From: Azolla caroliniana
Taxonomy: Eukaryota > Plantae > Polypodiophyta
DNA: 35,091 nucleotides
Direction: 5' to 3'
Assembly: GCA_043228905.1 (NCBI GenBank)
Contig: JBHGNT010000321.1
Location: forward strand, 1 to 35,091
Position 1 is the first letter of the stretch. The number at the start of each line of letters is the position of its first letter. The position numbers and the translations under genes are program-made. The notes below the pieces were generated by a model. The model searched no databases. It saw nothing but the letters and a program-made list of their open reading frames with translations, and was not told where the DNA came from. Positions 1 to 34,520 of this stretch are shown here, one piece after another.

Positions 1-3000
1 AACAAGTAACAGAGGATTATCCTAACACACTCTCGTTGTTAAGATTTAAAAAGTTCACCGGTTTTTGTCGATGAAAAATTAACTCATGAGCTATGATGTA
101 TCTAGTTTTTCCTATTCCTGCACTTGTACCCACGTGTCTCGGGTAAAAATCAATGATTCCAGGTATCTCGATTACATAGGAATTCATTTAGTAAATGAGT
201 TAGTTAATGCACTATTCTAGTGCCATGGTCGAAATAAAAAAAATGGTGCAATGCTTGTCGACAGTTGAACATTATTCTGCAATCTATGCATATTGTTTGA
301 AATTGTATCAAGTTATCTAAACTATAATTGTTGGTGTACTAATTTATCGTAACAATGTTGAGGAATAACCACAACTAAATATACTTCTTCTTGTTGTCCT
401 GAACAACATATTATTTTGTCCAATTTCATTCGAAACCTCTACCATTAATCGAATAATGGAATTAAGTTTAGAAATTGATGTTAGGAGAAAAAAATCAAAG
501 TAAAGTTCCTTATCAATCCTTCAAACATAATATTGATTATTTTGTTAGTTGTACATTATTGTATCACCTACTTTAGGTCTGGAGTTATTCAGTTATCAAA
601 CAGATAACAAATGATATGCGTCGGAAAGGTAATATATGATATGGTCCTTTCTATTCCTAAGAGTTGAACCCGGGTCTCTTGGGTCAGAGTCAAGTATTCT
701 ATCCAACTAGACTATCGTGGATCACATCTTGTGTGCTTTTTAATCTTGCTATCACTGATTAGAAATAAATAATATTTATATATTTCACAAGCATCAACAA
801 AAAACTGAGGATTATTCTAACACACTCTCGTTTTTAAGATTTAATAATTTCAAGGGTTTTTATCAATGCCATATAAACTCATGATATAGGATATATCTAC
901 TTGTAGCCGAGCGTCTCAGGTAAAAAGCAAGGATTCGAGGCAACTTGATTACAATGGTGTTCATTTAGTAAATGACTTAGTTAATGTACCATTTCAGTCC
1001 TTTGTTAGAAATAAAGAAACATGGTGCAATACTCATCGACAATTGACGATTACTCTGCAATCTATGCGTATTGTTTGAAATTCTATCGAATTATTGAAAC
1101 TGTAGGTGTACTAATTTGTCGTAACAATGTTGTGGATAACCAGAACTAAATATACTGCATCTTGTTATCCCGAACAACATAATGTTAGGTCTTCAGTTTT
1201 TGAGTTCTCGAGCACATGACATGCGTCGCAAAATATGATATATGATATTGTCTTTTCTATTGGTGGGAGTTGAACCCGGGTCTCTCGACAGTTGACCATT
1301 ATTCTGCAATCTATACGTAAAAAAACAAGGATCCGAACCAACTAGACTACAATGGAATTTATTTACTAAATGAATTAGTCAATGTAATATTCTAGTGCTT
1401 TGCTTCAAAGAAAGAAATATGGTGCAATGTTGATCGAGAGTTCCCCATTATTCTACAATCTATGTGTATTTTTGGAAATTCTATCAAGTCATCCAAACTA
1501 TAATTTGTCAGTATACTAATTTGTCGAGAGTAACCACGACTAAATCTATTGCTTCTTCTTGTCCCGAACAACATAATGTTTTGTCAAATTTCATTTGAAA
1601 CGTCTACTATTAATTGAATAATGGGATTAACTTTAGAAATTGATGTTAGGAGAAAAATATCAAAGCAAAGTTCGTCATCAATCCTTCAAACATAATATTG
1701 ATTATTTTGATATTTGTACATTATTGTAACATCTACTTTAGGTCTTGAGTTATCAAACCGTTAACACATGGTATGAGTCAGAAATTTAATATATGATATA
1801 CTTGTTTCCATTGCCGGTAGTTGAACCCGGGTCTCTCGGGTAACAACCGAGTATCCTAACCAACTATACTACAATGGATCCTATCTTCTCTACTTCTTAA
1901 TATTGCAATCATAGAATAGTAATAAATAATATTTATATGTTGCGCAAGCATCAACGAGAAACTGAGGATTATTCTAACACACTCTCGTTTTTAAGATTTA
2001 ATAATTTCAAGTGTTTTTATCAATACGATATTAACTCATGATCTATGATGTACCTAGTTTTTCCCATGCCAATTGTTGTACCCGGGAGTCTCGTGTAAAA
2101 AAGAAGGATCCGAACCAACTAGACTATACTGGAATTCTTTTAGTAAATGAATTAGTTAATATAATAGTCTAGTGCATTACTTCAAATCAAGAAACATTGT
2201 GCAATGCTCATCGAGAATTCACCATGATTCGACAATCTATGCGTATTTTTGAAATTGTATCAAGTTATCCAAACTATAATGCTTGGTGTACTAATTTGTC
2301 GTAACAATGTTGAGGAATAACCACGACTAAATATACTGCTTCTCCTTGTCCCGAACGACATGATGTTTTGTCAAAGTTCATTAGAAACCTCTACTATTAA
2401 TTGAATGTTCGTATTAAGTTTAGGAATTGATGTCAGGAGAAAATAATCAAAACCAAAGTTCATTATCAATCCTTCAAACATAATTTTGATTATTTTGTTA
2501 ATTGTACATTATTCGAACGACTACTTTAGAGGTTGAGTTTTATAGTTCATTTAGTTTATTGTACATTATTGTAACTACTTTACGTCCTGAGTTTTTGAGC
2601 TATCAAACAGTTAACACATGACATGCGTCGCAAAATTTTATATATGATATTACCTTTCTATTGCCAGGAGTTGAACACGGGTATCTCGGGTGAGAGCCGA
2701 GTATTCTAACCAATTAGACTTCAATGGATCACATCTTGTCCAATTTTTAATATTGCAATCATTGATTGGTAATAAATAATATTTATATATTGCTTAAGCA
2801 TCAATGAAAAACTAAGGATTGTTGTAAGACACTGTCGTTTCTAAGATTTAATAATTTCACGGCTTTTTATAGATGCCACAGTAACCTATGATATATAATG
2901 TATCTAGTTTTTCCAATTGCGTTTCAAGTAAGAATCAACGATTCAAGGCAACTTGATTACAATGGAATTCATTTTGCAATGCTCATCGACAGTTGACCAT

Positions 3001-3358
3001 TATTCTGGAATCTATGCGTATTGTTTGAAATTGTATCGAGTTATCCAAACTATAATTCTTAGTGTACTAATTTGTCGTACCAATGTTGATGAATAACCAC
3101 AACCAAATATACTACTTCTTGTTGTCTTGAACAACATAATGTTTTGTCCAATTTCATTTGAAACCTGTACCATTAATCGAATAATCAGATTAAGTTTAGA
3201 AATTGATATTCGGAGAGAAATATCAAAGTAAAGTTCATCATCAATCCTTTAAACATAATATTGATTATATTTTTAATGGTACAATATTGTAACATTTACT
3301 TTAGGTCTTGACTTTTTGAGTTATCATGCGTCGGAAATTTAATATATGACACTGTCAT

Positions 3359-3431
3359 TTCCATTGCCGGGAGTTGAACCCGGGTCTCTCAGGTGAGAGC
3401 CGAGTATCCTAACCAACTAGACAACAATGGA
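3359..3431 (-). tRNA. trnE-CUC: tRNA-Glu(CTC), near-intact copy
   Basis: Acceptor stem (TCCATTG/CAATGGA) and T arm are perfect. It differs from the array consensus by a G-U wobble in the anticodon stem and A9->T. Confidence 0.8.
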
Positions 3432-4879
3432 TAACATTTTGTGTGCTTTTTAATTTCGCAATCATTGATTAGAAATAAATAATATTTATATTTTGCGCAA
3501 GCATCAACGAAAAACTGAGGATTATTCTACCACACTCTAGTTTTTCAGATTTTATTATTTCAAGGATGCCACATTAACTCATGATAACTGATGGGAGTCT
3601 AGTGTAACAAACAAGGATCCAAACCAACTAGACTACAATGCAATTCATTTAGTAAATGAATTAGTTAATGTAATATTCTAGTCCTTGACTTCAAATAAAG
3701 AAACATGGTGCAATGCTCATCGAGAATTCATCTCTATTCGACAATCTATGCGTATTTTTGGAAATTGGATCAAGCTATCCAAACTATAATTGTTGGTGTA
3801 CTAATTTGTCATAACAATGTTGAGGAATAACCACCACTAAATATACTGCTTCTTCTTGTCGCGTACAACATAATATTTTGTCAAATTTCATTTCAAAGCT
3901 CTACTATTACGTGAATAATGGGATTAAGTTTAGAAATTGATGTGAGGAGAAAAAAATCAAAGCAAAGTTCTTTATCAATCCTTCAAACATAATATTGATT
4001 ATTTTGTTAATTGTAAATTATTGTAACTACTTTACGTCTTGAGTTTTGGAGTTATCAAACAGTTAAGACATGACATGCATTGCAAAACTTTATATATGAT
4101 ATTGTCCTTTCTATATCAGAGAGTTGAACTCGGGTCTCTTAGGTGAAAGCCGAGTATTCTAACCAACTAGACTACAATGGATCACATAGTCTACACTTTT
4201 AAATATTGCAATCACCGATTACTAATAAATAATATTTATATATTGCTTAAGCGTAAATGAAAAACTGAGGATTGTTCTAACACACTGTCATTTTTAAGAT
4301 CTAATAACTTCATGGCTTTTTATCGATGCCACATTAACTCATGATATATAATGTATCTAGTTTTTCCTATCGAGTTTCGAGTACGAATCAACGATTCGAG
4401 GCAACTTGATTACAATGGAATTCATTTAGTAAATAAATTAGTTAATTTTCTATTCTAGTGCTTTGCTACAAATAAAGAAACATGGTGCAATGCTTGTCGA
4501 CAGTTGAGCATTATTCTGCAATCTATGCCTATTGTTTGAAATTGTATTAAGGTATCCAAACTATAATTGTTGGTGTACTTATTTATCGTAACAATGTTAA
4601 AGAATAACCACAACTAAACATACTACTTCTTGTTGTCTCGAACAATATAATGTTTGGTCCAATTTCATTCAAAACCTGTAGCATTAATCAAATAATGGGA
4701 TTAAGTTCAGAAATTAATGTTATTAGAAAACAATTAAAGTAAAGTTCGTCATCGATCCGTCAAACATAATATTGATTATTTTGTGAATTGTACATTAATG
4801 TAAAACCTACTTTAGGTCTTGAGTTATCAAATAGTTAACACATGATATGCGTTGGAAATTTAATGTATGATATTGTTGT

Positions 4880-4952
4880 TTCCATTGCCGGTAGTTCAAC
4901 ACGGGTCTCTCGGGTGAAAGCCGAGTATCCTAACCAACTAAACTACAATGGA
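4880..4952 (-). pseudogene. tRNA-Glu(TTC) variant pseudogene (same anticodon also at ~4110, 6495, 22779)
   Basis: Plus-strand gtgaaag gives the loop CTTTCAC. The T arm and B box are damaged (ccggtagttcaacacgg). Confidence 0.75.
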
Positions 4953-7900
4953 TCCTATCTTGTGTATAGATATATTGCAATCATAGATTAGTAACAAGTA
5001 ATTTTATATATTGCACAAGCAGCAATGAGAAACTGAGGGTTATTCTAACCCACTCTCGTTTTTAAGATTTAATAATTTGAATGGTTCTTATCGATACGAC
5101 ATTACCTCATGATCTATGATGTATCTAGTTTTTCCAATGCCTATTGTTGTACCCGGGAGTCTCGTGTAAAAAACAAGGATTTGAACCAACTAGTCTAGAA
5201 TAGAATTCATTTATTAAATGAATTAGTAAATGTAATATTCTACTGCTTTGCTTCAAATAAAGAACTATGGTGCAATGTTGATCAAGGGTTCACCATTATT
5301 CTACAATCTATGTGTATGTTTGGGAATTCTATGAAGTTATCCAAACTATAATTGTCGGTATACCAATTTGTCGTAACCATATTGAGAAATAACCACCACT
5401 AAATATACTGCTTCTTCTTATCCCGAACAACCTAATGTTTTGTCAAATTTCATTTGAAACCTCTACAATTAATTGAATAATGGGATTATGTTTAGAAATT
5501 GATGTTAGGTGAAAAACCTGAATGTAAAGTTCTTTCTCAATCCTCCAAACATAATATTAATTATTTTGTTAATTACACATTATTGTAACAACTACTTTAG
5601 GGCTTGAGTTTTTGCGTTATCAAACAGTTAACACATGTTATGTGTCTTTTCCATTACCGGGAGTGGAACCCGGGTCTCTCAGGTGAGAGCTGAGTATTCT
5701 AACCAAGTAGACTCCAATGGATCACATCTTGTGTCCTTTTTAATATTGCAATCATTGACTAGAAATAAATAGTATTTATATATTGTGCAAGCATTAACGA
5801 AAAACTGAGAATTATTCTAACACACTCTCAATTTTAAGATTTAATAATTTCAAGGGTTTTTCTCTATGCCACATTAACTACTGATATATGATATATCTAC
5901 TTGTACCCGAGCATGTGAGGTAAAACAGCAAGGATCCGAGCAATTTGATTCCAATGGAATTCATTTAGTAAATGAATTAGTTAATGTTCCATTCTAGTCC
6001 TTTGTTACAACGAAAGAAACATTGTGCAATGATCATCGACAGTTGACTATTATTTTTCAATCTATGCGTATTGTTAGAAATTGTATCAAGTTATCGAAAC
6101 TATAATTTTTGGTGTACTAATTTGTCGTAACAATGTTGAGGAATAACCACAACTAAATATACTGCTTCTTCTTGTCCCGAACAACATAATGTTTTGTCAA
6201 ATTTCATTTGAAACCTCTAGTATTAATTGAATAATGGGATTAAGTTTAGACATTCATGTTAGGAGAAAAAAACCGGAGTAAAAGTCTTTATCAATCCTCC
6301 AAACATAATATTGAATATTTTGTTAACTGTACATTATTGTAACACCTACTTTAGGTCTTGAGTTTTGTACATTATTGTAACACCTACTTTAGGTCTTGAG
6401 TTTTTTTTGATACCTCTTTAGGTCTTGAGTTTTTGGGTTATCAAACAGTTAACACATCATATGCATCGGAAATTTAATATATGATATTGTTGTTTCTATT
6501 GCCGGTAGTTCAACACGGGTCTCTCGGGTGAAAGCCGAGTATCCTAACCAACTAGACTACAATGGCTCCTATCTTGTGTATAGATATATTGCAATCATAG
6601 ATTATTAATAAGTAATATGCATCGGAAATTTAATATGCATCGGAAAGGGTTTCCATTGGATCGGAAATTTAATTTCATATGCATCGAAAATTTAATATAT
6701 GATATTGTCGTTTCCATTGCTAGGAGTTGAACCTAGGTCTCTAAGGTAAGAGCCAAGTATCCTAACCAACTAGACTACAATGGATCATATCTAGTGTAGT
6801 TTTGAATATTGCTATGATTCATTAGTAATAAATAATATTGTTATGGTTGAACCCGGGTCTCTCGGGTGAGAGCCGAGTATCCTAACCAACTAGACTACAA
6901 TGGATCACATCTTGTGTAGTTTTTAATATTGGAATCATTGATTAGTAATAAATAATATTTATATATTGCGCAAGCAACAAAGAGAAACTTAGGATTATTC
7001 AAACACACTCTTGTTTTTAAGATTTAATAATTTCAAGGGTTTTTATCGATGCGACATTACCTCATGATCTAAGATGTGTCTAGTTTTTCCAATGACAACT
7101 AGACTACAATGGAATTCATTAAGTAAATGAATTAGTTAATGTAATATTCTAGTGCTTTACTTCAAATAAAAAAATATGGTGCAATGTTGATCGAGAGTTC
7201 ATCATTATTCTACAATCTATGTGTATTTTTGGAAATTCTATCCAATTATCCAAACTATAATTGTCGGTGTACTAATTTGTCATAACCATGTTGCGAAAAA
7301 ACCACGACTTAATATACTTCTTCTTCTTGTCATTAACAAGATAATGTTTTGTCAAATTCCATTTGAAACCTCTACTATTAATTGAATAATGGCATGAAGT
7401 TTAGAAATTGATGTTAGGAGAAAAAAATGAAAGTAAATTGCAATGATTGAATAGTAATAAATAATATTTATATAATATGCAAGCATCAACTAGAAACTGA
7501 GGATTATTCTAACACACTCTCGTTTTTAAGATTTAATAATTTCAAGGGTTTATATCGATGTCATATTAACTCATAATCTATGATATATCTAGTTTTTCCC
7601 ATGCCAATTGTTCTACCCGGGAGTCTGAAGTAAAAAACAAGGATCCGAACCAACTAGACTCCAATAGAATTCATTTAGTAAATGAATTAGTTAATGTAAT
7701 ATTCAAGTTCTTTACTTCAAATAAAGAAACATGGTGCAATGCTCATCGAGAATACACCATTATTCGACAATGTATGCGTATATTTTGGAAATTGTATCAA
7801 GTTATCCAAACTATAATTCTTGGTGTACTAATTTTTCTTAACAATGTTGAGGAATAACCACAACTAAATATACAACTTCTTTTTGTCCCGAACAACATAA

Positions 7901-8912
7901 TGTTTTGTAAAATTTCATTAAAAACCTCTACTATTAATTGAATATTGGGATGAAGTTTAGAAATTAATTGGAGGAGAAAGAAATCAAACCAAAGTTCTTT
8001 ATCAATCTTCAAACATAATATTGCTTATTTTGTTAATTGTAAATTATTGTAACTACTTTACGTCTTGAGCTTTTGAGTTATCAAACACATGACATGCGTC
8101 GCAAACTTTTATATATGATATTGTCCTTTCTATTCCCACGGGTCTCTTGTGTGAGAACTGAGTATTCTAAGCAACTAGACTTTAATGGATCAAATCTTGT
8201 ACACTTTTTAATATTACAATCATTCATTAGTAGTAAATAATATTTATATATTGCACCAGCATCAACAAGAAACAAAGGATTATTCTAACACACTCTCATT
8301 TTAAAGCTTTATTAATTTCACGAGTTTTTATTTATGCCACATTAACTCATGATACATAATGTATTTAGTTTTTCGTATGCCTGTACTTGTCGCCGCACGT
8401 TTCGAGTAGAGATTAACGATTCCACGTAACTTGATTACTATGGAATGCATTTAGTAAATGAATTAGTTAATGTACCATTATACTCCTTTGTTACAAATAA
8501 AGAAACATGGTGCAATGCTCATCAACAGTTGACCATTATTCTGGAATCTATGCGTATTGTTTGAAATTGTATCGAGTTATCCAAACTATAATTGTTGGTG
8601 TACTAATTTGTCGTACCAATGTTGACGAATAACCACAACCAAATATACTGCTTCTTGTTATCCCGAACAACATAATATTTTGTCCAATTTCATTTGAAAC
8701 CTCTACCATTAATCGAATAATTGGATTAAGTTTAGAAATTGATGTTAGAAGAGAAAAGTAAAAGTAATGTTCGTCATCAATCCTTCAAACGTAATATTGA
8801 TTATTTTGTTAATTGGACATTATTATAACAACTACTTTAGGCCTTGAGTTTTTGAGTTATCAAACAGTTAACACATGATATCCGTGGGAAATTTAATATA
8901 TGATATTGTCGT

Positions 8913-8985
8913 TTCCATTCCCGGGAGTTGAACCCGGGTCTCTCGGGTGAGAGCCGAGTATCCTAACCAACTAGACTACAATGGA
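8913..8985 (-). tRNA. trnE-CUC: tRNA-Glu(CTC), best-preserved full-length copy (one G7:G66 acceptor-stem mismatch)
   Basis: Reverse complement reads TCCATTG TA GTCTAGTTGGTTAGGAT A CTCGG CTCTCAC CCGAG AGAC CCGGG TTCAACT CCCGG GAATGGA A. It has a cloverleaf fold, CTC anticodon, A box (TAGTCTAGTTGG) and B box (GGTTCAACTCC), and closely resembles land-plant nuclear tRNA-Glu(CTC). Confidence 0.85.
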
Positions 8986-9010
8986 TCATATCTTGTGTAC
9001 TTTTTAATAT
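8986..9010 (-). promoter_or_regulatory. Plant tRNA-gene-like 5' flank (CAA at -10..-8, TATTAAAA at about -24..-17)
   Basis: Plus strand has ttg at 8993-8995 and tttttaatat at 9001-9010, both conserved in most units. Plant tRNA genes typically have upstream CAA and TATA-like elements, but such motifs are weak evidence in AT-rich DNA. Confidence 0.35.
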
Positions 9011-11030
9011 TGCAATCATAGATTAGTAATCAATAATATTTATATATAGCGCAAGCATTAACGAGAAACTGAGGATTATTCTAACACAATCTCGTTTTTA
9101 AGATTAAATAATTTCAAGGGTTTTTATCGATGTGACATTACCTTATGATCTATGATGTATCTAGTTTTTCCAATGCCTATTGTTGTACCCGGGAGTCTCG
9201 TGTAAAAGACAAAGATCCGAACCAAATAGACTACAATGAAAATACTTTACTAAATGAATTACTTAATGTAATATTATAGTGTGCTTTGTTTCAAATAAAG
9301 AAATAGGTTGCAATGTTGATCGAGAGTTCACCATTATTCTACAATCTATGGGTATTTTTGCACTATTTCGAGGAAAGTTCGTCATCAATCCTTCAAACAT
9401 AATCTTGAGTTTTTGAGTTATCAAACAATTAAAACATGATATGCGTTGAAAATTTAATATATGATATTGTCGTTTCCATTGTCGGGTGTTGAACCCGGGT
9501 CTCTCGGGTGAGAGCCTAGTATCCTAACGAACTAGACTACAATGGATTATATCTTGTGTACTTTTCAATAATATTTAAATATTGCGCAAGCACTAACGAG
9601 AAACAGGGGATTATTCTAACACACTCTCGTTTTTAAGATTTAATAATTTCACGGGTTTCCATCGATGCGATATTAACTCATGATCTATGATGATCTAGTT
9701 TTTCCCATGCTAATTGCTGTACCCGGGAGTCTCGTGTAAAAATCATGGATCTGAACGAACTAGACTACAATGGAATTCATTTAGTAAATGAATTAGTTAA
9801 TGTAATATTCTAGTGCTTTACTTCAAATAAAGAAACATGGTGCAATGCTCATCGTGAATTCACCATTATTCGACAATCTATGCATATTTTTGGAAATTGT
9901 ATCATGTTATCCAAACAATAACTCTTGGTGTACTAATTTGTCGTAACAATGTTGAAGAATAACCACGACTAAATATACTACTTATTCTTGTCCCGAACAA
10001 CATAATGTTTTGTCAAATTAGATTTGAAACTGCTACTATTAATCGAATAATGGGATTATGTTTAGAAATTGATGTTAGGAGAAAAAAATCGAAGTAAAGT
10101 TCGTCATCAATCGTTCAAACATAATATTGATTATTTTGTTAATTGTACATTATTCTAACAACTACTTTATTTCTTGAGTTTTTGAGTTATTAAATACATG
10201 ACATGCGTCGCAAACTTTTATATATGATATTGTCCTTTCTATTCCCAAGAGTTGAACACGGGTCTCTTGGGTGAGAGCCGAGTATTCTGACCAACTACAC
10301 ATTAATGGATACATCTTGTACACTTTTTAATATTACATTCATTCATTAGTAGTAAATAATATTTATATATTGCACAAGCATCAACAAGAAACAGAGGATT
10401 ATTCTAACACACTCTCGTTTTTAAGATTTATTAATTTCACGGGTTTTTATCGATGCCACATTAACTCATGATATATAATGTATTTAGTTTTTCGTATGGC
10501 TATACTTGTCCCCGCATGTTTCGAGTAGAAATTAACGATTCGGGGCAATTTGATTACAATGCAATCATTTAGAAAATAAATTAGTCAATGTACTATTCTA
10601 GTGCTTTGCTGCAAATAAAGAAACATGGTGCAATGCTTATCGACAGTTGAACATTATTTTGTATTCTATGCGTATTGCTTGAAATTGTATCGAGTTATGC
10701 CAACTGTAATTTTTGGTATACTAATTTGTCATAGCAATGTTGACGAATAACCACAACCAAATATACTTCTTCTTGTTGTCTCGAACAACATAATGTTTTG
10801 TCCAATTTCATTGGAAAGTTGTACCATTAATCGAATAATGGGATTAAGTTTAGAAATTGATGTTAGGAGAAAAAAATTAAAGTAAAGTTCGTGATCAATT
10901 CTTCAAACATAATATTGATTATTTTCTTAATTGTACATTATTATAGCAGCTAGTTTAGGTCTTGAGTTTTTGAGTTATCAAACAGTTAACACATGATATC
11001 CGTCGGAAAATCAATACATGATATTATCGT

Positions 11031-11103
11031 TTCCATTGCCGGGAGTTGAACCCGGGTCTTTCGGGTGAGAGCCGAGTATCCCAACCAACTACACTACAAT
11101 AGA
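11031..11103 (-). pseudogene. tRNA-Glu(CTC) copy with acceptor and D-arm substitutions
   Basis: Full length with intact T arm and CTC anticodon, and about 4 substitutions versus the consensus. Confidence 0.75.
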
Positions 11104-20100: not shown

Positions 20101-20135
20101 CATGCATTGCAAAATTTAATATATGATATTGTCTT

Positions 20136-20208
20136 GTCTATTCCCGGGAGTTGAACCCGGGTCTCTCGTGTGAGAGCCGAGTATTCTAACCAAGTAGACT
20201 ACAATGGA
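20136..20208 (-). pseudogene. tRNA-Glu(CTC) pseudogene, representative of the 'tctattc' subfamily
   Basis: The 3' acceptor strand GAATAGA mispairs with TCCATTG at two positions. The same variant is shared with copies at ~650, 8128, 10238, 14300, 33114 and 34478. Confidence 0.75.
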
Positions 20209-20391
20209 TCACATCTTGTGCACTTTTTAATATTGCAATCATTTATTGGTAATAAATAATATTTATTTATTGCGCAAGCATCAACGAGAAACTGAAGATT
20301 ATTATAACCCACTCTAGTTTTTAAGATTTAATAATTTCAAGGTTTTTTGTCAATGTGACATTACCTCATGATCTATGATGTATCTAGTTTT

Positions 20392-20463
20392 CCCAATGCC
20401 TATTGTTGTACCCAGGAGTCTCGTGTAAAAAACAAGGATCCGAACCAACTAGACTACAATGGA
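20392..20463 (-). pseudogene. Second, decayed tRNA-Glu-derived copy within the unit (representative; also 2062, 5133, 9169 and others)
   Basis: Its consensus tccaatgcctattgttgtacccgggagtctcgtgtaaaaaacaaggatccgaaccaactagactacaatgga aligns without gaps to the 72-nt tRNA consensus at 56/72 by hand count. It lies 255 bp from the primary copy (20137->20392, 8914->9169). Confidence 0.85.
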
Positions 20464-23400: not shown

Positions 23401-26400
23401 ATGTTAGGAGAAAAACCTTAATGTAAAGTTCTTTCTTAATCCTTCAAACATAATATTCATTATTATGTTAATTGTACATTATTGTAACAACTACTTTAGG
23501 GCTTCAGTTTTTATGTTATCAAACAATTAACACATGACATGTGTCGCAAAATTTGATATATGATATTGTCTTTTTCATTACCGGGAGTGGAACCCGGGTC
23601 TCTCGGGTGAGAGCTCAGTATTCTAACCAACTAGTCTACAATGGATCACATCTTGTGTGCTTTGTAATATTGTAATCATTAATTAGAAATAAATAATATT
23701 TATATATTGCGCGAGCATCAACGAAAAAGTGAGAATTATTCTAACACACTGTCATTTTTAAGATTTAATAATTTCAAGGGTTTTTATCGATGCCACATTA
23801 ACTCATGATATATGATATATCTACTTGTACCCGAGCGTGTTAGGTAAGACAACAAAAATCCGCCGCAACTTGATTACAATGGAATTCATTTAGTAAATGA
23901 ATTAGTTAATGTACCATTCTAGTCCTTTGTTACAAAGAAAGAAACATTGTGCAATGATCATCGACAGTTGACTATAATATTTCAATCTATGCGTATTGTT
24001 AGAAATTGTATCAAGTTATTGAAACTATAATTTTTGGTGTACTAATTTGTCGTAACAATGTTGAGGAATAACCAAAACTAAATATACTGCTTCTTCTTGT
24101 CCCGAACAACATAATCTTTCGTCAAATTTGATTTGGAACCTCTAATATTAATTGAATAATGGGATTAAGTTTAGAAATTGATGTTAGGAGAAAAAAACCA
24201 AAGTAAAAGTCTTTATCAATCCTCCAAACATAATATTGAATATTTTGTTAACTGTACATTATTGTAACCCCTAATTTAGGTCTTGAGTTTTTGAGTTATC
24301 AAACAGTTAACACATGATATGCATCGGAAATTTAATATATGATATTGTTGTTTCCATTGCTGGGAGTTGGACCCGGGTCTCTAAGGTGTGAGCCAAGTAT
24401 CCTAACCAACTAGACTACAATGCATCATATCTAGTGTTCTTTTTAATATTGCTATGATTGATTAGTAATAAATAATATTTATATATTTTGCAAGTATCAA
24501 CGAAAAACTAAGGATTATTATAACACACTCTCATTTATAAGATTTAATAATTTCAAGGGTTTTTATCGATGCCACATTAACTCATCATATATGATATATT
24601 TACTTGTACCAAGGCGTTTCAGGTGAAAAGCAAGGAACCGAGGCAACTTGATTAGAATGGAATTTATTTAGTAAATGAATTAGTTAATGTACCATTCTAG
24701 TCCTTTGTTACAAATAAAGAAACATGGTGCAATACTCATCAACAGTTAACCATTATTCTGCAATCTATGCGTATTGTTTGAAATTGTATCAAGTTATCCA
24801 AACTATGATTGCTGGTATACTCAATTCTCGTAACAATGTTGAGCAATAACCACAACTAAATATACTACTTCTAATTGTGCTGAAAAACATAATGTTTTGA
24901 CCAATTTCATTTGAAACCTCTACCATTAATTGAATAATGGGATTAAGTTTAGAAATAGATGTTAGGAGAAAAAGTTCATCATCAATCCTTCAAACATAAT
25001 CTTCAGTTTTGGAGTTACAAACACTTAACACATGATATGTGTCGGAAATTTAATATATGATATTGTCATTTCCATTGTTGGGAGTTGAACCCGGATCTCT
25101 CAGGTGAGAGCCAAGTATCCTAAACAACTAGACTACAATGTATCATTGTACTTTTTAATATTGCAATCATTGATTAGTAATAAATAATATTTATATATTG
25201 CTTAAACAAGGATTTGAACCAACTAGACTACAATGGAATTCATTTAGTAAATGATTTAGTTAATGTAATATTCTAGTGGTTTAATTTAAATAAAGAAACA
25301 TGGTGCAATGCTCATCGAGAGTTTACCATTATTCTGCAATCTATTCGTATTGTTTGAAATTGTATCAAGTTATCCAAACTATAATTGTTGGTGTACTAAT
25401 TTATCGTAACAATGTTGAGGAATAACCACAACTAAATATATTGTTTCTTCTCTTCCCAAACAACATAAAGTTTTGTCAAATTTCATTTGAAACCTCTCCT
25501 ATTAATTGAATAATGGGATTAAATTTAGAAATTGATGTGAGGAGAAAAAAATTAAAGAAAAGTTCTTTATCAATTCTTCAAACATAATATTGATTATTTG
25601 GTTAATTGTACATTATTGTAACTACTTTACGTCTTGAGTTTTTGAGTTATCAAACAGTTAACCCATGACATGCGTCGCAAAATTTGATATATGATATTGT
25701 CTTTTTCATTGTTGAGAGTTGAACTCGGGTCTCTCGGGTGAGAGCCGAGTATCCTAACCAACTAGACTACAATGGATCACATCTTTTGCACTTTTTAATA
25801 TTGCAATCATCGATTTAAAATAAATAATATTTATATACTGTGCACGCCTCAACGAGTAACCGAGGATTATTCTAACACACTCTCCTTTTTAAGATTTAAT
25901 AATTTCAAGCGTTTTTATCGATGCCACATGAACTTATGATCTATGATGTATCTAGTGTTTCCAATGCCTGTAGTTGTACTTGGGCATCTCGGGTAAAAAG
26001 CAAGGATGGACTACATTGGAATTCATTTAGTAAATAAATTAGTTAATGTAATATTCTAGTACTTTACTACAAATAAAGAAACATGGCGCAATGCTCATCG
26101 ACAGTTGACCATTATTTGACAATCTATGCATATTTTTTGAAATTGTATCAACTTGTCCAAACTATAATTTTTGGTGTACTAATTTGCTGTACCAATGTGG
26201 AGGCATAACCCCGACTAAATATATTGTTTCTTCTTGTCCCGAACAACATAATGTTTTGTCAAATTTCATTTGAAACCCCTACCATTAATCAAATAATGGG
26301 ATTAACTTTAGAAATTGATTTTATAAGAAAAAAATCAAAGTAAAGTTCATCATCAATCCTTCAAACATAATATTGATTATTTTGTTAATTGTACATTATT

Positions 26401-26608
26401 GTAACAAGTACTATAGGTATTTCGCAAGCATCACCAAACAACTGTGGATTATTCAAACACACTCTCGTTTTTAAGATTTAATAAGTTCAAGGGTTTTTAT
26501 CGATGCCACATTAACTTAAGATCTATGATGTATATAGTGTTTCCAATGCCTGTAGTTGAACTCGGGCGTCTCGGGTAAAAACCAACGATCCGAACCAACT
26601 AGACTACA

Positions 26609-26890
26609 CGTATCATTTATGTTGGGTCCAAGAAATTCAGGCTACCATTCTCCACAATTTGCGTGATGCTCAAAGTACATACAAGAGGATTGTGAACCGT
26701 CATCACCTAGAATCCTCAAAAAAAATTTATGTGCGGGATCGTGTATGGCTTCTATAACACAACATCAAGACCACTATGCCTCGCGGTAAATTATATTTCC
26801 AACGCTTTGGCCCATACGAGATCACTGGTAATATAAGCGATGTTGCATTTCGTCTTGGCCTCCCTCCTCACATGCATCTTCACCCGGTGT
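26609..26890 (+). mobile_element. Ty3/Gypsy (chromovirus/Tf2-like) integrase C-terminal fragment with GPY/F region
   Basis: Translates as QEIQATILHNLRDAQSTYKRIVNRHH...VRDRVWLL*HNIKTTMPRGKLYFQRFGPYEITGNISDVAFRLGLPPHMHLHPV. It has one stop and is cut off just before the usual FHVS motif. Confidence 0.88.
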
Positions 26891-26910
26891 CCGGAATTCG
26901 AGATTGTTGC

Positions 26911-26913
<3 letters not shown>

Positions 26914-26944
<31 letters not shown>
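26914..26944. repeat. (TC)n microsatellite, ~15 units
   Basis: Directly visible. Confidence 0.95.
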
Positions 26945-26946
<2 letters not shown>

Positions 26947-26991
26947 ATACCTACTTAATTAAAATGATTATGAGATACTACCTTGATCGAT

Positions 26992-27340
26992 TGTTAGTTA
27001 TATACATAATATGCATAATAGAGATGACAAGCAAGGCAGTTGACACATAATATACTCTATCAACCAAAATTATATTACGATAACCAAACGGATCAATCTT
27101 GACACAATGCTCCCGATCCCTTTTTATAGGCGATCTGAGAGACTCTTCCAAGATATACACTTGCCATTCGGCAAGAATCTACAATTACACTAACTGTTCT
27201 ATTTTCTTAACTATTCTATTCTACTACTTGGCAAAAAATATTACTTCAGCTACTTCCTTTCACACTAGTCTTTTACACCTCTGACTCCGACTCCGACTAG
27301 CTTGTCGCCTTGTAGACTTTGTCTAGCCGACCGGCTAACA
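26992..27340 (-). mobile_element. Solo-LTR-like element, 349 bp
   Basis: Perfect 6-bp terminal inverted repeat TGTTAG...CTAACA and an internal TATAAAAA on the minus strand (27121-27128). It begins exactly where Copia similarity stops. Flanks ATCTT/ATCGA match at only 3 of 5 bp, so a TSD is not demonstrated. Confidence 0.65.
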
Positions 27341-28125
27341 AAGATTTTGGATGGCAAGCCTTGAACTCTTTTTTGTTGTTGACATTGTTGTAGTGCTTCA
27401 TAGTGTACATGCCCAAGCCGGAAATGCCATAATTGAGTTAGTGAAGATCTTTTCTTGTGTTGTATTTGCAAGACTGTTGAGAATGCATTTGGAGGATGAC
27501 TCTATATTGGATACAAGTGCGTCTCCTTAGGATACACCAACTGTGTACTTGTGTTTCCAGTTTTGAAAATTAGAATTGCGTTCCCCTTACATAATTGTAT
27601 TATTAGTCCATCTATAGTTGCTTGTCCAATTGATAATAAGTGTTTGGCTAGTCCTAGTACATAATAGACATTTGGGACTGTAATCACGTGATTGTCTGAC
27701 AATCTGAGTTCAATAGTTCCTTTTCCGATTGTTGTTTTTCGTTTGTTGTCTCCAAAAGTAAATGATAGTGGATTGGAAAGAATCTTATAGCAATTCAACC
27801 AGTCCTTTCGATATGTGAGGTGATGTGTAGGACTAGTGTCTAGGTACCATGTATCATGTTCGGTTTTTGTCTCTTCTGTAGTGACATGGTATGCTTGCAA
27901 AATATTGTCATCTTCTGGTATTTCATCCAAATTCTATATATTCTTTTGACTTCAAGTTTGATTTGGCTTCTAATGTTGCATTATTTGCTTGTGATTGTCT
28001 TTTGTTCTCTGCAACTTGCTTGAATCGACATACCCATTCTGTATGCCCTTCTTTCTTACAATATCTTCAAATCAGTTTGAAACGGGTTTGTCTTGTGGAC
28101 GCGGGTTTGTGTGGGTGTGGTGGTC
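27341..28125 (-). mobile_element. Ty1/Copia gag-pol fragment (zinc knuckle, protease, GAG-pre-integrase), pseudogenised
   Basis: CCHC knuckle *RYCKKEGHTEWVC (28028-28069, first Cys is a stop), protease motif WYLDTSPTHHLT followed by VPNVYYVLGLAKHLLSIGQ, and LWHFRLGH. Frameshifts and stops separate the pieces. The upper boundary is approximate. Confidence 0.92.
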
Positions 28126-28617
28126 GCTAGAGGACACATGGGCGTGTTCAAAAAGAGATTTTGTTATTGTAGGCATGCAAAGGGGATCTCCACCACCCCA
28201 TTCTAGGGGAGGTGAGCTAAAGGTATCAAACAACTTTTGAAAGAAGATGAACTTCTTTGCGGCCGAGAGTTTGGTGATGAATTCTTTATAACCTTCAATT
28301 TTAAGGTCTTCTAAGTTTTCTATGAGTGAACTAAAGGGAGATTTGGGGGAGGGGGAGGGAATGCTTTGCGTGCTACTAGGGCTAGTTGAGGATAAATCTA
28401 GTTGGAGCATCCTAGATGGCGGGGGGATTTTTTTAGGTGGGGATTTGGGGTTGTTAAGACACACATTATATAGATGTTGGATTTCATGTGGGACTTCGTT
28501 ATTTATTAATTGACAAGAAAGACGGTGGGGTGAGGGAGCTTCCCTGTTTACAACGGTTGTTTGAGTGTTGGCGACGACGTGCTTGAGATTGGTCGTCATT
28601 GGTGGAGAATCCGGCAC
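28072..28617 (-). CDS. Pro/Ser-rich ORF of unknown function, possibly an accessory ORF of the PLE; its end runs into Copia sequence
   Basis: 181-aa ORF in the track, and the stop-free frame extends upstream past 28750. It has the same C/A-rich sense-strand bias as the PLE RT. No domain recognised. Confidence 0.3.
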   Translation of the reverse strand: MPDSPPMTTNLKHVVANTQTTVVNREAPSPHRLSCQLINNEVPHEIQHLYNVCLNNPKSPPKKIPPPSRMLQLDLSSTSPSSTQSIPSPSPKSPFSSLIENLEDLKIEGYKEFITKLSAAKKFIFFQKLFDTFSSPPLEWGGGDPLCMPTITKSLFEHAHVSSSDHHTHTNPRPQDKPVSN

Positions 28618-28861
28618 AAAGTCGATGGTGGTTGTGGGTGGATCCGTGAGTATGTCGGCGATGGTGGATCTGTGGGTGCGTCGGCGTTGGGTGTGCGACG
28701 TTGAATGGATCGTGTTTTGGGTCCTCTTGTTGAGACGTTTGTGGCCATGTATCTGTATTGGAACAAAAGAGGAGAGAGAGGAGAGAAGGGGAGAAAAAGA
28801 GGGAAAGATATGAGGGAGGGAAATATAGTAGTGTGGGGTAGGATGGAGCGTATGTTGAGAA

Positions 28862-28880
28862 GGTTAGGGTTTAGGGTTTT
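28862..28880 (+). repeat. Short plant-type telomeric repeat tract (GGTTAGGGTTTAGGGTTTT) / telo-box
   Basis: About 2.5 units of TTTAGGG, with the C-rich strand on the PLE sense strand. Confidence 0.6.
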
Positions 28881-29317
28881 GTAATAGTTGCTAGTTTTTG
28901 TAGGGGTAAAGCTATTAGTATGGAGAATTGAAAGAGTAAGAGAAGTAGAGGGCAGAAAACCAAGTTTATGGGGGTGTACGACTACTAGGAGGTATGGAAC
29001 ATATGATGTAATAAAAATAGAAATTTATGTTGGTATATGACTACTAGGGGTATAATATATATGATATGAAGTGATGAGTGCTTTTCTAAGATTGATTAAA
29101 GTGTGCGGCACTTCATCGGGGGTTGTTTGGGGTGGACTCAAGTTTAGATCTTATTTGTATGTCTAAACATAAGTAGTGATATAGTTTTAGAAGAATAGAA
29201 AAGTGAGGGTGTGGGTGGGGGTTAGGGGAGTGTAGCTTGTTGAAGATATCAAAAGGATTTAAACCTAATCAAAGTTTTTAGAACATATTAAAGATCATTG
29301 GGATAACTTAAGTTATT

Positions 29318-29925
29318 AGACACCAATAAAGTATTATTAAAACACCAATATAGAGTATTATTAAAACGGGAGCACACGCTTAGATGAAAGGGAGTTGTTT
29401 AAACACACGCTTAAACAAACACTTAAAAGAAAGATTATTATAAAAAATAAAAAATAAAAATAGAAAAGAGAGATTGAGATTAAAAAATGATTATGGTTAA
29501 GAAGGGATTATGATTAAGGGGGAGGGGGTTGCTAAAACAAAGTACTTAAACGAATGTTTAAACAAATATTTAGATAAGAAAACACTTGGGCAAACACTTA
29601 AAGCAAGGTTATGATTAAAACAGAAGGGAGGGATTATGGTTAAAGAAAAGGGGTCATGGCTAAGAAGAGAATGATTATGATTAAGAGAGGAGAATACTTA
29701 AACAAATGTTTAAACAAAAAGTTAAACCTAAAAATGATTGAACAAGTACTTTAAAAAAAGGGGTTAAACAAGTACGTAATAAAAATGATTATTAAACAAG
29801 TACTTAATAGAAAATGATTAAATAAATACTTAAAAACTTAAGACAAAAAAATTTGATAAAAAAGTGATTAAACAAGTACTTAATAAAAATTTATTAAATA
29901 AGTAGTTAAGAACTTATGACAAACA
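29318..29925. repeat. Degenerate short-period AT-rich repeats downstream of the PLE RT
   Basis: Recurrent taaacaagtact(taa) and gattatg(a/g)ttaag motifs, plus a duplicated acaccaata..gtattattaaaac at 29320-29367. Confidence 0.7.
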
Positions 29926-29980
29926 ATTAGATAAGAGCAACACATAGAAGGAAAGAAAGTTTTACTATCACAAGGCAACG

Positions 29981-30026
29981 ATCGACAAATGCATTTCGCC
30001 TCGATGGAGGCGCTTCAGTGCCTGAT
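29981..30026 (-). ncRNA. Minimal type I hammerhead ribozyme motif (A9C core variant)
   Basis: Minus strand reads ATCAGGCA-CTGAAGC-GCCTC-CATC-GAGGC-GAAA-TGCA-TT-TGTCGAT. Stem I is ATC(A)GGCA/TGTCGAT, stem II is a perfect 5 bp, and stem III is a palindromic mini-stem. It lies ~160 nt after the RT stop, where PLE hammerheads are expected. Confidence 0.75.
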
Positions 30027-30188
30027 GTACAAATGATGAAAACTAAGCCTACTAGGTTGCTCTTTTTATAGGGAGAGGGAGGAGAGTCCTTTGTATGTAG
30101 GACATACAAAAGTGTGTACAAAGGGAAGGTAAAAGAGTGTACACAAGACTTTAGGTGGGGGTTAAGAGGGGTGAGAGTACATAAAACA

Positions 30189-31953
30189 TTAGGTGGGGGG
30201 AAAGGATAAGTGTACTAGGTGGTTTCTTAGTTTTTTATCATTTAGCCAACATGTCAGAGGGGGTGTAAGGGAACTATATTGTGGTTGTCCTAGAAGGGGT
30301 TTATGTTTGTTTCTCACGAGCGCTCCGATCTGGAGTTTTTTGATACATGGGGAGTAACGAAGCTTAATAACAATGGGTGGAGGTTTTTTGTTGTTGGGTT
30401 GGTTAGGGAGTAGTTGGTTTCGTATGGAGTAGGGGACGGTCGAAAAACACTTGAGTAGGAACTTCAATGGGTAGCCCCTAGCTCTTAGGTGGTCGTAGAA
30501 CTTTTTGCGTAGTTCCATGTAGCCATTTTCCGAGCTCTCCCGGATAGCATACCATTTTAGTTCTCCCGTGATGAAGCCCTTTTTTGTGCTATGGGGTGCG
30601 AGGATTTCCACGGGAGGTACATTTAGGCATTGAGAGGTTTTTGGTGGCATGCGGTGTCGAGGATGCCGAATTCTTTAAAGTATGGGCCTTTGAAGAAGAC
30701 ATCGTCCAGGATGGTGATCTCTTTAGGGGAGGTTGTTGATTCAATACGGATTTGTTGTTGTAGAGGCATGCCGTATTGGTGTAAGAAGGTGTGAAGTGTA
30801 TCGGGGGAACCTTCCCAAACTCATATGGCATCATCGATGTAGCATTTTGTAGTAGAGTAGTTGCGATGTTTGGAAAGCTAGGTTGTCATCCTCTAGCTAC
30901 GAAAGAAACAAGCAAGCGTAAACAAAGGCAAAATTACCACCCATTGCGATGCATTTAATTTGTAACCAAAAAGTATTATTAAAGGAGAGAAAATTGTTTC
31001 TAAGTATAAGTTCGGCGACACTCATAATGATTTTGGTTTTATGTGGTGGGAAATGATGTGAAATAGATTTTTCAAAAACCAATAGACCTTCCATGGTAGG
31101 TATACTGGGATATAATGACACTATGTCAAAAGAAAACAATGTGCAATTTTTGTGGAAGGTGTGGTGTGCTAGGTCCTTAACAAGTGTTAAGGAGTCTTTG
31201 AGGTGTTGTTTTTTAGACAATAAGATGTATTAGATGGTGTAGCCATTTAGAGGCTCTTTCGAAAACATAATTGTTGTAGGCGCAAATAGGGCATCCTACA
31301 ACAATGGGCTTGTGGATTTTGGGGATGATGTAGAAACGACATATCTTGAAACCATGTTTGGGTTTCTGAAGGAGGAATCTAATTTCCTCCTTGGAGAGGT
31401 GGGGGGAAGCTTTTATACATAGGTGTTCAAGTCGACTGTGGAGAGTTTCTAGGGGGACGTCTTTGACGGGGGTGTAGGTGTTTTTGTCGTTGAGCTGTCT
31501 AAGGCATTCGTTAAGGTACCAATCCTTAGAGAGAATGCATGTGCCTAGATTTTTATCCGTGGGTTTAATAACTATGTCTTGATTGTTTTTGAGATTATGT
31601 AGTGCAGTTCTAAAGTTCCTATGTGGGCGAGGTTGGATGGTGGGTGGGGAGGGGAGGGCAGAGGTGATAGATGTGATGGTTTGGGTGATTTCTGGCACGG
31701 TTGGGGGATTCCAACTGGGGTTCGGTATTCTAAATGAAGAGATAATGTTAGTAGAGTTTATAAAGAAATATTTGAGGCGGTAAGTTCTATCTAAGGATAC
31801 AACGACATCTATCAATTGTTGTTTTCTAATAGGCTAGGGTGGGGGAATAAAGTCTAGACCTAAGCTTAAAAGTTTGAGTTGGGGTGGAGGAAGGTGGAAA
31901 GAGGAAAGGTTGTGCAATGAGTGATTAGTGATCCTATTCTCGGGCTGGGAGGG
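30189..31953 (-). mobile_element. Penelope-like retroelement reverse transcriptase, endonuclease-deficient type, pseudogenised and 5'-truncated
   Basis: PLE motifs appear in order: HNLSSFHL..LKLLSLGLDFIP (~31835-31915), IVIKPTDKNLGTCIL, FYIIPKIHK, LFSFDIVSLYPSIP, IAMGGNFAFVYACLF, catalytic YIDD (30830-30841), KPLNA*MYLPWKSSHP, and thumb region KGFITGEL..LRARGYP. The frame ends at KKLRNHLVHLSFPPT* with no GIY-YIG domain. Several stops and frameshifts. Confidence 0.92.
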
Positions 31954-34520
31954 TGTTCATCGACAGTTGACCATTATTCTTCAATCTATGCGTATTCTTT
32001 GAAATTGTATAGAGTTATCCAAACTATAAGTGTTGGTGTACTAATTTGTCATACCAATGTTGACAAATAACCACAACCAAATATACTGCTTCTTGTTGTC
32101 TCGAACAACATAATGTTTTGTCCAATTTCATTTGAAACCCCTACCATTAATCGAATAATGGGATTAAGTTTAGAAATTGATGTTAGGAGACAAAAATCAA
32201 AGTAAAGTTTATCATCAATCCTTCAAACATAATATTGATTATTTTGTTAATTGTACATTATTGTAACATTTACTTTAGGTCTTGAGTTTTTGAGTTATCA
32301 AACAGTTAACGCATTACATGCGTCAGAAATTTAATATATGACATTGTCGTTTCCATTGCCTGGAGTTGAACCCGGGTCTCTCGGGTGAGAGCTCAATATT
32401 CTAACTAACTAGACTACAATGGATCACATCTTGTGTGCTTTTTAATATTGCAATCATTGATTAGAAATAAATAATATTTATATTTTGCGCAAGCATCAAC
32501 GAAAAACAGAGGATTATTCTACCAGACTCTCATTTTTAAGATTTAATAATTTCAAGGGTTATTCTCGATGCCACATTAACTCATGATATTTGATATATCT
32601 AGTTGTACACGGGTGTCTCAGGTAAAAAGCAAGGAACCGAGGCAACATGATTACAATGGAATTCATTTAGAAAATGAATTAGTTAATGTACCATTCTAGT
32701 CCTTTGTTACAAATAAAGAAACATGGTGCAATACTCATCAACTGTTAACCATTATTCCGCAATCCCTGCGTATTGTTTAAAATTGTAACAATTGTTGGTG
32801 CACTGATTTATCGTAACAATGTTGAGGAATAACCACAACTAAATATATTGGTTCTTGTTGTCCCGAACAACATAATGTTTAGTCCAATTTCATTCGATAC
32901 CTCTACCATTAACCGAATAATGGGATTAAGTTTAGAAATTGATGTGAGGAGAGAAAAATCAAAGTAAAGTTCGTCATCAATCCTTCAAACATAATATTGA
33001 TTATTTTGTTAATTGTACATTATTATAACAGCTACTTTAGCTCTTGAGTATTTGAGTTATCAAACAGTTAACAAATGACATGCATCGCAAAATTTTATAT
33101 ATGATATTGTCCTTTCTATTCCCGGGAGTTGAACCCAAGTCTCTCGTGTGAGAGCCGAGTATTCTAACGAACTAAACTACAATGGATCACATCTTGTGCA
33201 CTATTTAATATTGAAATCATTGATTAGAAAAATATAATATTTATATTTTGCGCAAGCATCAACAACAAACTGAGAATTATTCTAACACACTCTCGTTTTT
33301 AAGATTTAATAATTTGAACGGATTTTATCGATGCCACATTAACTCATGATATCTTATATATCTAGTTGTACCTGGGCGTCTCAGGTAAAAAGCAAGGATC
33401 CAAGGCAACTTGATTACAATGGAATTCGTTTACTAAATGAATTAGTTAATGTACCATTCTAGTCCTTTGTTACAAATAAAGAAACATGGTGCAATACTCA
33501 TCAATTGTTAACCATTATTCTGCAATCTATGCCTATTGTTTGAAATTATTTCAAGTTATCCAAACTATAATTGTTGGTGTACTAATTTATCGTAACAATG
33601 TTGAGGAATAACCACAACTAAACATATTGCGTCTTGTTGTCCCGAACAACATAATTTTTTGACAAATTTCATTTGAAACCTCTACCTTTAATTGATTAAT
33701 GGGATTAAGTTTAGAGATTGATGTTAGGAGAAAAAAATTAAAGTAAAGTTCGTCATCAATCCTTCAAACATAATATTTAGTTTTTGAGTTACAAACACTT
33801 AACACATGATATGCGTTGGAAATTTAATATATGATATTGTCATTTCCATTGCCGGGAGTTAAACCCGGATCTCTCAGGTGAGAGCCAAGTATCCTAAACA
33901 ACTAGACTACAATGGATCATTGTACTTTTTAATATTGCAATCATTGATTAGTAATAAATAATATTTATATATTGCTTAAACAAGGATCTGTACCAATTAG
34001 ACGACAATGGAATTCATTTAGTAAATGATTTAGTTAATGTAATATTCTAGTGGTTTACTTCAAATAAAGAAGCATGGTGCAATGCTCATCGAGAGTTTAC
34101 CATTATTCGGCAATCTATTCGTATTGTTTGAAATTGTATCAAGTTATCCAAACTATAATTGTTGGTGTACTAATTTGTCGTAACAATGTTGACGAATAAC
34201 CACAACTAAATATATTGTTTCTTCTCTTCCCGAACAACATAATGTTTTGTCAAATTTCATTTGAAACGTCTCCTATTAATTGAATAATGGTATTAAGTTT
34301 AGAAATTGATGTGAGGAGAAAAAAATCAAAGCAAAGTCCTTTATCAATCCTTCAAACATAATATTGATTATTTGGTTAATTGTACATTATTGTAACTAGT
34401 TTACGTCTTGAGTTTTTGAGTTATCAAACATTAACACATGACATGCGTCGCAAAATTTTATATGTGATATTGTCCTTTCTATTCCCGGGAGTTGAACTCG
34501 GGTCTCTCGGGTGAGAGCTG
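31954..34520 (-). repeat. tRNA-Glu-containing tandem satellite array (right block)
   Basis: Same unit and orientation as the left block. tRNA copies start at about 32352, 33114, 33845 and 34478 (truncated). Confidence 0.97.
34477..34520 (-). pseudogene. 3' part of tRNA-Glu(CTC), truncated by retroelement sequence
   Basis: Acceptor 3' strand, T arm and anticodon loop are present. Similarity ends at gagagctg|ggtgcg. Confidence 0.85.

Follow-up and report, generated by a model that had tools for sequence, protein, structure and literature searches.

The question raised by a 35,091-nucleotide stretch of the Azolla caroliniana genome (assembly GCA_043228905.1, contig JBHGNT010000321.1, positions 1 to 35,091 of the forward strand; referred to here as the window) is what to make of the long tandem array of tRNA-Glu sequences that occupies most of it, and in particular whether the array is a bank of working tRNA genes, a structural element of the chromosome, or the remains of one gene that was amplified and then abandoned. 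In our view the array is most likely a fossil satellite that grew from a nuclear, plant-type tRNA-Glu(CTC) gene and now evolves neutrally, and not a working tRNA gene bank. The organization of the repeated unit, the identity of the gene that founded it, and above all the manner in which the tRNA segments have decayed relative to the spacer around them are the main grounds for this reading, and they are described below in that order.

Organization of the array and its unit

Tandem Repeats Finder, with a longest period of 500, is blind to the array, and BLAST and nhmmer tiling were used in its place; a hidden Markov model (HMM) of the unit was built from 14 full monomers and the window was tiled with it. 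The model covers positions 1-26609 and 31954-34523, a total of 29,065 bases, on the minus strand throughout, and the consensus unit is 796 bp long. A single unit used as a BLAST query matches across the entire window at 75-90% identity. The main satellite block (1-26609, minus strand) is composed of about 33 full or truncated units of ~796 bp, and after an insertion the array resumes for about 3.5 further units (31954-34523, minus strand). The initial annotation had given the span as 1-34520, which stands for these two blocks but not for the 5.3 kb between them (26610-31953), which is transposon debris. The right end of the array is at 34523; on the left the array starts mid-unit at the window edge so that its border is not reached, and it probably continues past that edge.

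The tRNA-Glu sequence carried by the unit (tRNA-A) is present, in HMM coordinates, as 42 segments of at least 20 nt; 37 of these reach 60 nt or more, and 31 are 73-mers without gaps. All are on the minus strand, and the earlier count of approximately 42 co-oriented copies in 29 kb is therefore confirmed. ARAGORN reports 23 tRNAs, exclusively on the minus strand, 19 of which are Glu (CTC or TTC), the remainder being single 'Asn', 'Lys' and 'Val' calls that correspond to Glu copies with point-mutated anticodons. The Rfam tRNA model has 29 matches (29-59 bits), also restricted to the minus strand, and the 73-nt tRNA consensus used as a BLAST query gives 38 long and 17 short matches, nearly all on that strand. 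By majority, the copies give a 73-nt tRNA-Glu(CTC) consensus in which 21 of 21 cloverleaf pairs are formed and, as was noted at the outset, there is no copy that is identical to it. The nearest (8913-8985, minus strand; Rfam 57 bits) has one mismatch, C66G, which breaks an acceptor-stem pair, and a copy at 3359-3431 (minus strand; Rfam 58.7 bits) has two mismatches, A9T and C40T, and retains all 21 pairs.

Every unit also contains a second tRNA-Glu relic (tRNA-B, HMM positions 542-614), which is more degenerate, is represented by 40 segments, and is identical to tRNA-A at 57 of 74 positions. The two co-oriented tRNA-like segments are spaced 255 and 540 bp apart. A complete example of the unit (HMM 1-795) is found at 8191-8985 on the minus strand, with tRNA-A at 8913-8985 and the tRNA-B relic at 8372-8444; a further tRNA-B relic (9168-9240, minus strand, HMM 542-614), with a broken B box (GGTAC), is positioned upstream of the next tRNA-A at a distance of 255 bp. 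The possibility that the 796-bp unit is itself a higher-order repeat of a monomer of about 255 bp is only partly supported, in that the tRNA-B relic is real but the flanks of the two segments are not significantly alike. There is no open reading frame (ORF) that recurs in unit phase across the array, and a protein-coding reading was rejected on this account.

Two clearly distinct subtypes of tRNA-B alternate in parts of the array (8372-8444, 9168-9240, 10491-10563, 11286-11358 and others), and the 3' end variants of tRNA-A, GGCAATGGAA and GGGAATAGAA, alternate in the same manner. The alternation hints at an old period of two units (about 1.6 kb) that is now blurred.

The founding tRNA gene

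The consensus was compared by tRNA k-mers of up to 21 nt with the supplement of PMC12652284, which includes a high-confidence tRNA-Glu(CTC) isodecoder that is common to several angiosperms and has a tRNAscan score of 78.9. The array consensus is identical to this isodecoder at 70 of 73 positions, the differences being G4A, G59C and C69T. Positions 4 and 69 are pairing partners, and G4A and C69T are both CpG transitions; among the files for five species in the same supplement the A4 form is seen once only, in a CpG-decayed Arabidopsis pseudogene with a score of 22.3. The founder would thus have been either a lineage-specific isodecoder or a copy that was already methylated and slightly decayed.

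The region upstream of tRNA-A in the unit consensus includes a TATA-like stretch rich in AT and, at about -10, a CAA motif, a layout that is described for plant Pol III tRNA promoters (RNA polymerase III, Pol III; Yukawa et al. 2000, as cited in PMC13578239). Downstream, the first run of four T residues (T4) in the unit consensus is at about +155, although one third of the copies have TTTT at +21/22. The founder appears to be a real nuclear, plant-type tRNA-Glu(CTC) gene that brought its own flanks with it. Since the 3' acceptor strand is complete, the flank is of native type and there is no tail, the unit is better explained by tandem duplication of a genomic gene than by origin from a short interspersed nuclear element (SINE).

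Sequence constraint on the tRNA segments

The most direct test of selection is a comparison of the 11 closest pairs of paralogous units, in which 61 of 628 tRNA-A sites differ (9.7%), as compared to 415 of 5971 spacer sites (6.95%; Fisher p=0.015). When CpG sites are left out of the same pairs the values are 8.1% and 6.5%, which are not significantly different. Since the last duplications, then, the tRNA segments have decayed at least as fast as the spacer. Divergence from the consensus is 0.096 for tRNA-A and 0.089 for the spacer, and outside CpG and CHG sites, the comparison that had been recommended for this locus, it is 0.076 and 0.080, respectively. The A box (0.077) and the B box (0.082) diverge to a similar extent as the spacer (0.089). 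The initial annotation had stated that equal decay of boxes and spacer, together with an absence of Pol III, TFIIIC or CENH3 signal, would reduce the array to a neutral satellite that had captured a tRNA, and on the sequence side equal decay is what is found.

The cloverleaf likewise gives little indication of having been maintained. In 37 copies, 83.3% of stem cells are paired, and 82.4% are paired when the partners are shuffled. Double changes in stems are seen in 12 cells, where 8.2 are expected, and are located at CpG-containing pairs; the few that look compensatory do so because deamination on both strands at CpG pairs mimics compensation, and there is no compensatory stem evolution. All 21 stem pairs are kept in only 2 of the 37 copies: that at 33844-33916 is mutated at the invariant positions G19 and C56, and downstream of that at 3359-3431 the first 260 nt contain no T4 run. 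Anticodons have drifted among the copies to TTC, GTT, CTT, CAC and CTG, and just seven copies have strict A and B boxes together. Each of the stem-breaking variants G24A, C66G and G70A is carried by about 40% of the copies, and pseudogene subfamilies must therefore themselves have been amplified. The tRNA part of the unit shows no selective constraint and its copies are pseudogenes, in agreement with the earlier proposal that the array does not supply tRNA.

Some observations weigh against complete neutrality. The context-adjusted divergence ratio of tRNA-A is 0.76, which is at the low end of the range for spacer windows (0.74-1.42) and ranks 8 among 724 windows, and at A/T sites the divergence of tRNA-A is 0.032 versus 0.057 (p=0.024). 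This low divergence could reflect weak early constraint or gene conversion. Strict B boxes number 19 on the minus strand and zero on the plus strand, with 0.2 expected in shuffled sequence; there are 37 core B-box matches and 29 A-box-like sites. The 19 strict B boxes and 29 A-box-like sites that remain could still be bound by protein.

Decay, age and growth of the array

Transitions relative to the consensus occur at 0.150 per cell at CG, 0.170 at CHG and 0.069 at CHH positions, and at 0.021 at A/T sites. The excess at CG and CHG suggests long-term cytosine methylation of the plant-heterochromatin type, and the array is presumably methylated and silent today. Its surroundings are heterochromatin-like: remnants of gypsy, copia and Penelope-like elements lie within the array, and its flank carries an ORF for a protease of a long terminal repeat (LTR) element. 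The substitution spectrum relative to the consensus is unusual in that C>G (236) and G>C (206) exceed C>A (172) and G>T (135), an excess that may come from subfamily variants such as C66G being counted repeatedly.

Unit identity averages 84.5% (range 77-95%) and is 83.5% for adjacent units, such that adjacent units are no closer than distant ones, and no local homogenization (concerted evolution) of monomers is seen across the units of the array. There is no identity peak at offsets of 1-12 units, and a regular short-period higher-order repeat was rejected for this reason, although the two subtypes do alternate in places. Larger segments behave differently from neighbors. A block of about eight units at 1-6366 (minus strand) is unit-for-unit 90-95% identical to the paralogous block at 16939-24423 (minus strand), at an offset of 19 units, and the units at 33187-34523 are 90-94% identical to those at 24426-25776. 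A rearranged unit, composed of HMM pieces 41-149, 430-464 and 1-578, is found three times (1185-1878, 16296-16938 and 18206-18925) and has therefore been propagated by block duplication. Block matches at 90-95% in the absence of similarity between neighbors indicate that the array grew through duplications that each took in a block of several units, and that a long period of decay followed.

Textbook neutral rates in plants are 0.7-1.3e-8 per site per year. At these rates the bulk divergence suggests an age of roughly 6-12 million years, and the youngest blocks one of roughly 2-5 million years; both are probably overestimates, because methylated DNA mutates faster.

Copies of the family are also present in independent sequencing runs. 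Part of a 3-kb stretch is found in 10 runs from five studies, all of them DNA and none RNA, and low-coverage runs contain 20-28% of the k-mers of the stretch. A 5.6 kb segment (21296-26900) was aligned to the Logan contigs of four DNA runs from four studies, three of one organism (A) and one of a second (B). The number of short contigs that match it ranges from 806 to 2481 per run, at 85-100% identity, with similar identity profiles in organisms A and B. The presence of hundreds to thousands of diverged contigs per run shows that this is a many-copy family and not an assembly artefact.

A plausible history of the array would begin with duplication of a genomic segment in which a genuine tRNA gene lay between its own flanks. 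From this a unit of ~796 bp would have arisen, with one good copy (tRNA-A) and one that was already degenerate (tRNA-B). The unit would then have been amplified head to tail, presumably through unequal exchange, and later growth would have proceeded through duplicated blocks of several units, ranging in size from several kb to about 17 kb. Afterwards the array would have resided in repressed, cytosine-methylated, transposon-rich chromatin, where it decayed neutrally and its tRNA parts became pseudogenes.

Alternative explanations

A silent reserve of functional tRNA-Glu genes, repressed by methylation and capable of being reactivated in particular tissues or under stress, would have the architecture seen here, in which every tandem unit combines a tRNA gene with an upstream flank of native appearance. 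The Arabidopsis clusters offer a precedent, being methylated and silent (PMC7544208), and reactivation of the SYY cluster in root tips is reported (PMC12308677). However, only 2 of 37 cloverleafs survive, one with G19 and C56 mutated and the other without a T4 run within 260 nt, the anticodons have drifted, and the tRNA has decayed no more slowly than the spacer since the last duplications, whereas the Pol III cis-elements of the Arabidopsis clusters are reported to be well conserved (PMC7544208). A reserve of this type is thus highly unlikely. The 19 strict and 37 core co-oriented B-box matches in 29 kb, against 0.2 expected, would suit a platform that binds TFIIIC, together with condensin or cohesin, without transcription, and that acts as a heterochromatin boundary or a site of nuclear organization. 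A human tRNA tandem repeat has been put forward as a boundary element (PMC4041453), and the Entamoeba arrays have likewise been discussed in structural terms (PMC2652664). A platform nevertheless seems decidedly improbable: the B boxes diverge like the spacer (0.082 and 0.089), that of the tRNA-B relic is lost, the units are not homogenized, and the methylation-type decay and transposon invasion suggest a position inside heterochromatin and not at its border.

A long tandem array in a retrotransposon-rich context might also be a functional centromeric or pericentromeric satellite, but units that are 77-95% identical, with neither local homogenization nor a regular higher-order repeat, make it very improbable that this is one. 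The structural roles put forward in the initial annotation (a TFIIIC/B-box platform, a boundary or a centromere) accordingly find no support in an array that is invaded by transposons and whose boxes and units behave in this manner. There is some formal resemblance to a tandem non-autonomous retroelement with a tRNA-derived head, either a SINE-derived satellite (PMC10702118) or a structure of the Cassandra type, a terminal-repeat retrotransposon in miniature (TRIM) with LTRs, of which tandem arrays are known (PMC7215508), and the pair of co-oriented tRNA-like segments, at spacings of 255 and 540 bp, can be read as two LTRs and an internal region. No significant similarity is found between the sequence that follows tRNA-A and that which follows tRNA-B (z=0.3-1.6), however, and hence there is no LTR pair; inspection of the consensus by eye reveals no clear primer-binding site or polypurine tract, and the unit consensus shows neither a poly(A) nor an A-rich tail. 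Moreover the tRNA is identical to a canonical gene at 70 of 73 positions and extends in full to the discriminator base, which SINE heads do not, and we give a retroelement origin very little credence.

The insertion and the right flank

The composite transposon debris at 26610-31953 (no strand assigned) is delimited by the edge coordinates of the unit HMM and by a shift in composition, and about 75 bp of the unit (HMM 471-545) are missing at the break. Near its left side is a fragment of the C-terminus of a Ty3/gypsy-type integrase (SH3_Tf2-1; 26776-26958, plus strand; Pfam E=9e-8), which lacks both of its ends when compared with other copies in the genome; four runs show the loose ends, at 26627 and 26890. 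The integrase fragment is followed by a Ty1/copia fragment with Pol_BBD and GAG-pre-integrase matches (27265-27930, minus strand; Pfam E=2e-17 and 8e-7). To the right, the ORF list includes broken ORFs (30189-31815, minus strand) that resemble a Penelope-like reverse transcriptase, at 33-40% identity to PF28514 proteins. For this Penelope-like region (30189-31953) the best relatives all have PF28514, one being from a sea anemone, and a Pfam search of the region itself gives no match; the 5' side of the element adjoins the array at unit position 470. A search of 26600-32000 with all Rfam families at E up to 1 yields no hammerhead or other family, and no Rfam family besides tRNA is found anywhere in the window.

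Among other features of the debris, we note a perfect (TC)15 microsatellite at 26914-26944, an AT-rich minisatellite block with periods of 17-76 bp at 29313-29934, and a 263-codon stop-free stretch at 28075-28863 (minus strand) that lies in strong GC skew, the plus strand being G-rich, and has no Pfam match. Contigs with about 12% divergence span the junction between array and gypsy sequence (26609/26610) in runs of both organisms A and B. It seems that this junction, and hence a larger block including the insertion, has been duplicated elsewhere in the genome.

To the right of the array an ORF at 34479-35009 (minus strand) resembles the aspartic protease of LTR retrotransposons; it has 76 relatives, some of which have PF13650 or PF13975, and its protein-atlas neighbors point the same way. 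Opposite to it is a 208-codon stop-free stretch (34468-35091, plus strand) that runs off the right edge of the window and has no Pfam match; at most one of the two is a real frame.

Relationship to known tRNA gene clusters and satellites

Clusters of tRNA genes (tDNAs) are well documented in plants. Arabidopsis thaliana has 27 tandem tRNA-Pro genes, 27 Tyr-Tyr-Ser units on chromosome 1, and tRNA-Cys genes in 0.4-kb units (PMC7544208, PMC2886086, PMC10701932), and other clusters include Ile and Ala in maize and Gln in some grasses and Rosaceae (PMC13437025, PMC13578239, PMC11700998). Glu is not among the clustered isotypes in the plant surveys (PMC13437025, PMC13578239, PMC11700998), and where they have been studied the clusters are methylated and silent (PMC7544208). 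The Azolla array is like the Arabidopsis clusters in having head-to-tail units, each with a nuclear tRNA gene and its flanks, that arose by local duplication, and it probably shares their methylated, silent chromatin state. It differs in that its isotype is Glu, its copies are pseudogenes, its units are about 15% diverged, and it is longer (more than 29 kb), belongs to a highly repeated family and is invaded by transposons.

A further comparison is with satellites derived from SINEs in squamates (PMC10702118) and from ribosomal DNA (rDNA) spacers in tomato (PMC2679016), which likewise have a seed that is transcribed by, or derived from sequence transcribed by, Pol III or Pol I. The seed of the Azolla array is distinct from these in being a whole genomic tRNA gene with native flanks, and its monomer is long (796 bp); unlike typical satellites, it is without homogenization. 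The tRNA arrays of Entamoeba, for which a structural role has been proposed (PMC2652664), are also long and tandem with units built around tRNA genes, but they hold almost all of the functional tRNA genes together with short tandem repeats, whereas the copies here are decayed and are not the working set. The human tRNA tandem repeat at 1q23.3, with 9-43 copies of a 7.3-kb unit, resembles the array in having tRNA-containing units on the scale of a macrosatellite, but the human unit is GC-rich and CTCF-binding, with several tRNA genes and a proposed boundary function (PMC4041453). No published description of a tRNA-Glu satellite was found, although the literature covered excludes most subscription journals and this is weak evidence of novelty.

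The array has the head-to-tail, non-coding monomer and the high copy number of a satellite without its concerted evolution, and the tandem units of one isotype of a functional homocluster without the intact genes and conserved Pol III elements. We class it more readily as satellite DNA with a Pol III gene as its seed, beside the SINE- and rDNA-derived satellites. A broader interpretation is that tRNA genes of several isotypes are preferred seeds of satellites here, perhaps because tDNAs bound by Pol III and TFIIIC stall replication forks and so lead to local re-replication, unequal exchange or circle-mediated amplification, and that the resulting B-box arrays could keep a role, dependent on TFIIIC or condensin, in the organization of heterochromatin. 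We regard this as unlikely, but if it were true it would constitute a lineage-specific route from housekeeping Pol III genes to structural DNA on the megabase scale.

Recent plant tRNA surveys drop pseudogenes, and the clustering that they report in land plants typically involves fewer than 5% of tDNAs and few isotypes, such as Pro, Ser, Tyr, Gln, Ile and Ala (PMC13437025, PMC13578239). Filtering of this sort leaves arrays of the present kind unseen, and in annotation they inflate tRNA gene counts and yield false 'Asn', 'Lys' and 'Val' calls. The Azolla array represents the end state of a tDNA cluster, in which a tRNA gene has seeded a long-monomer satellite and amplification has continued beyond the death of the gene itself.

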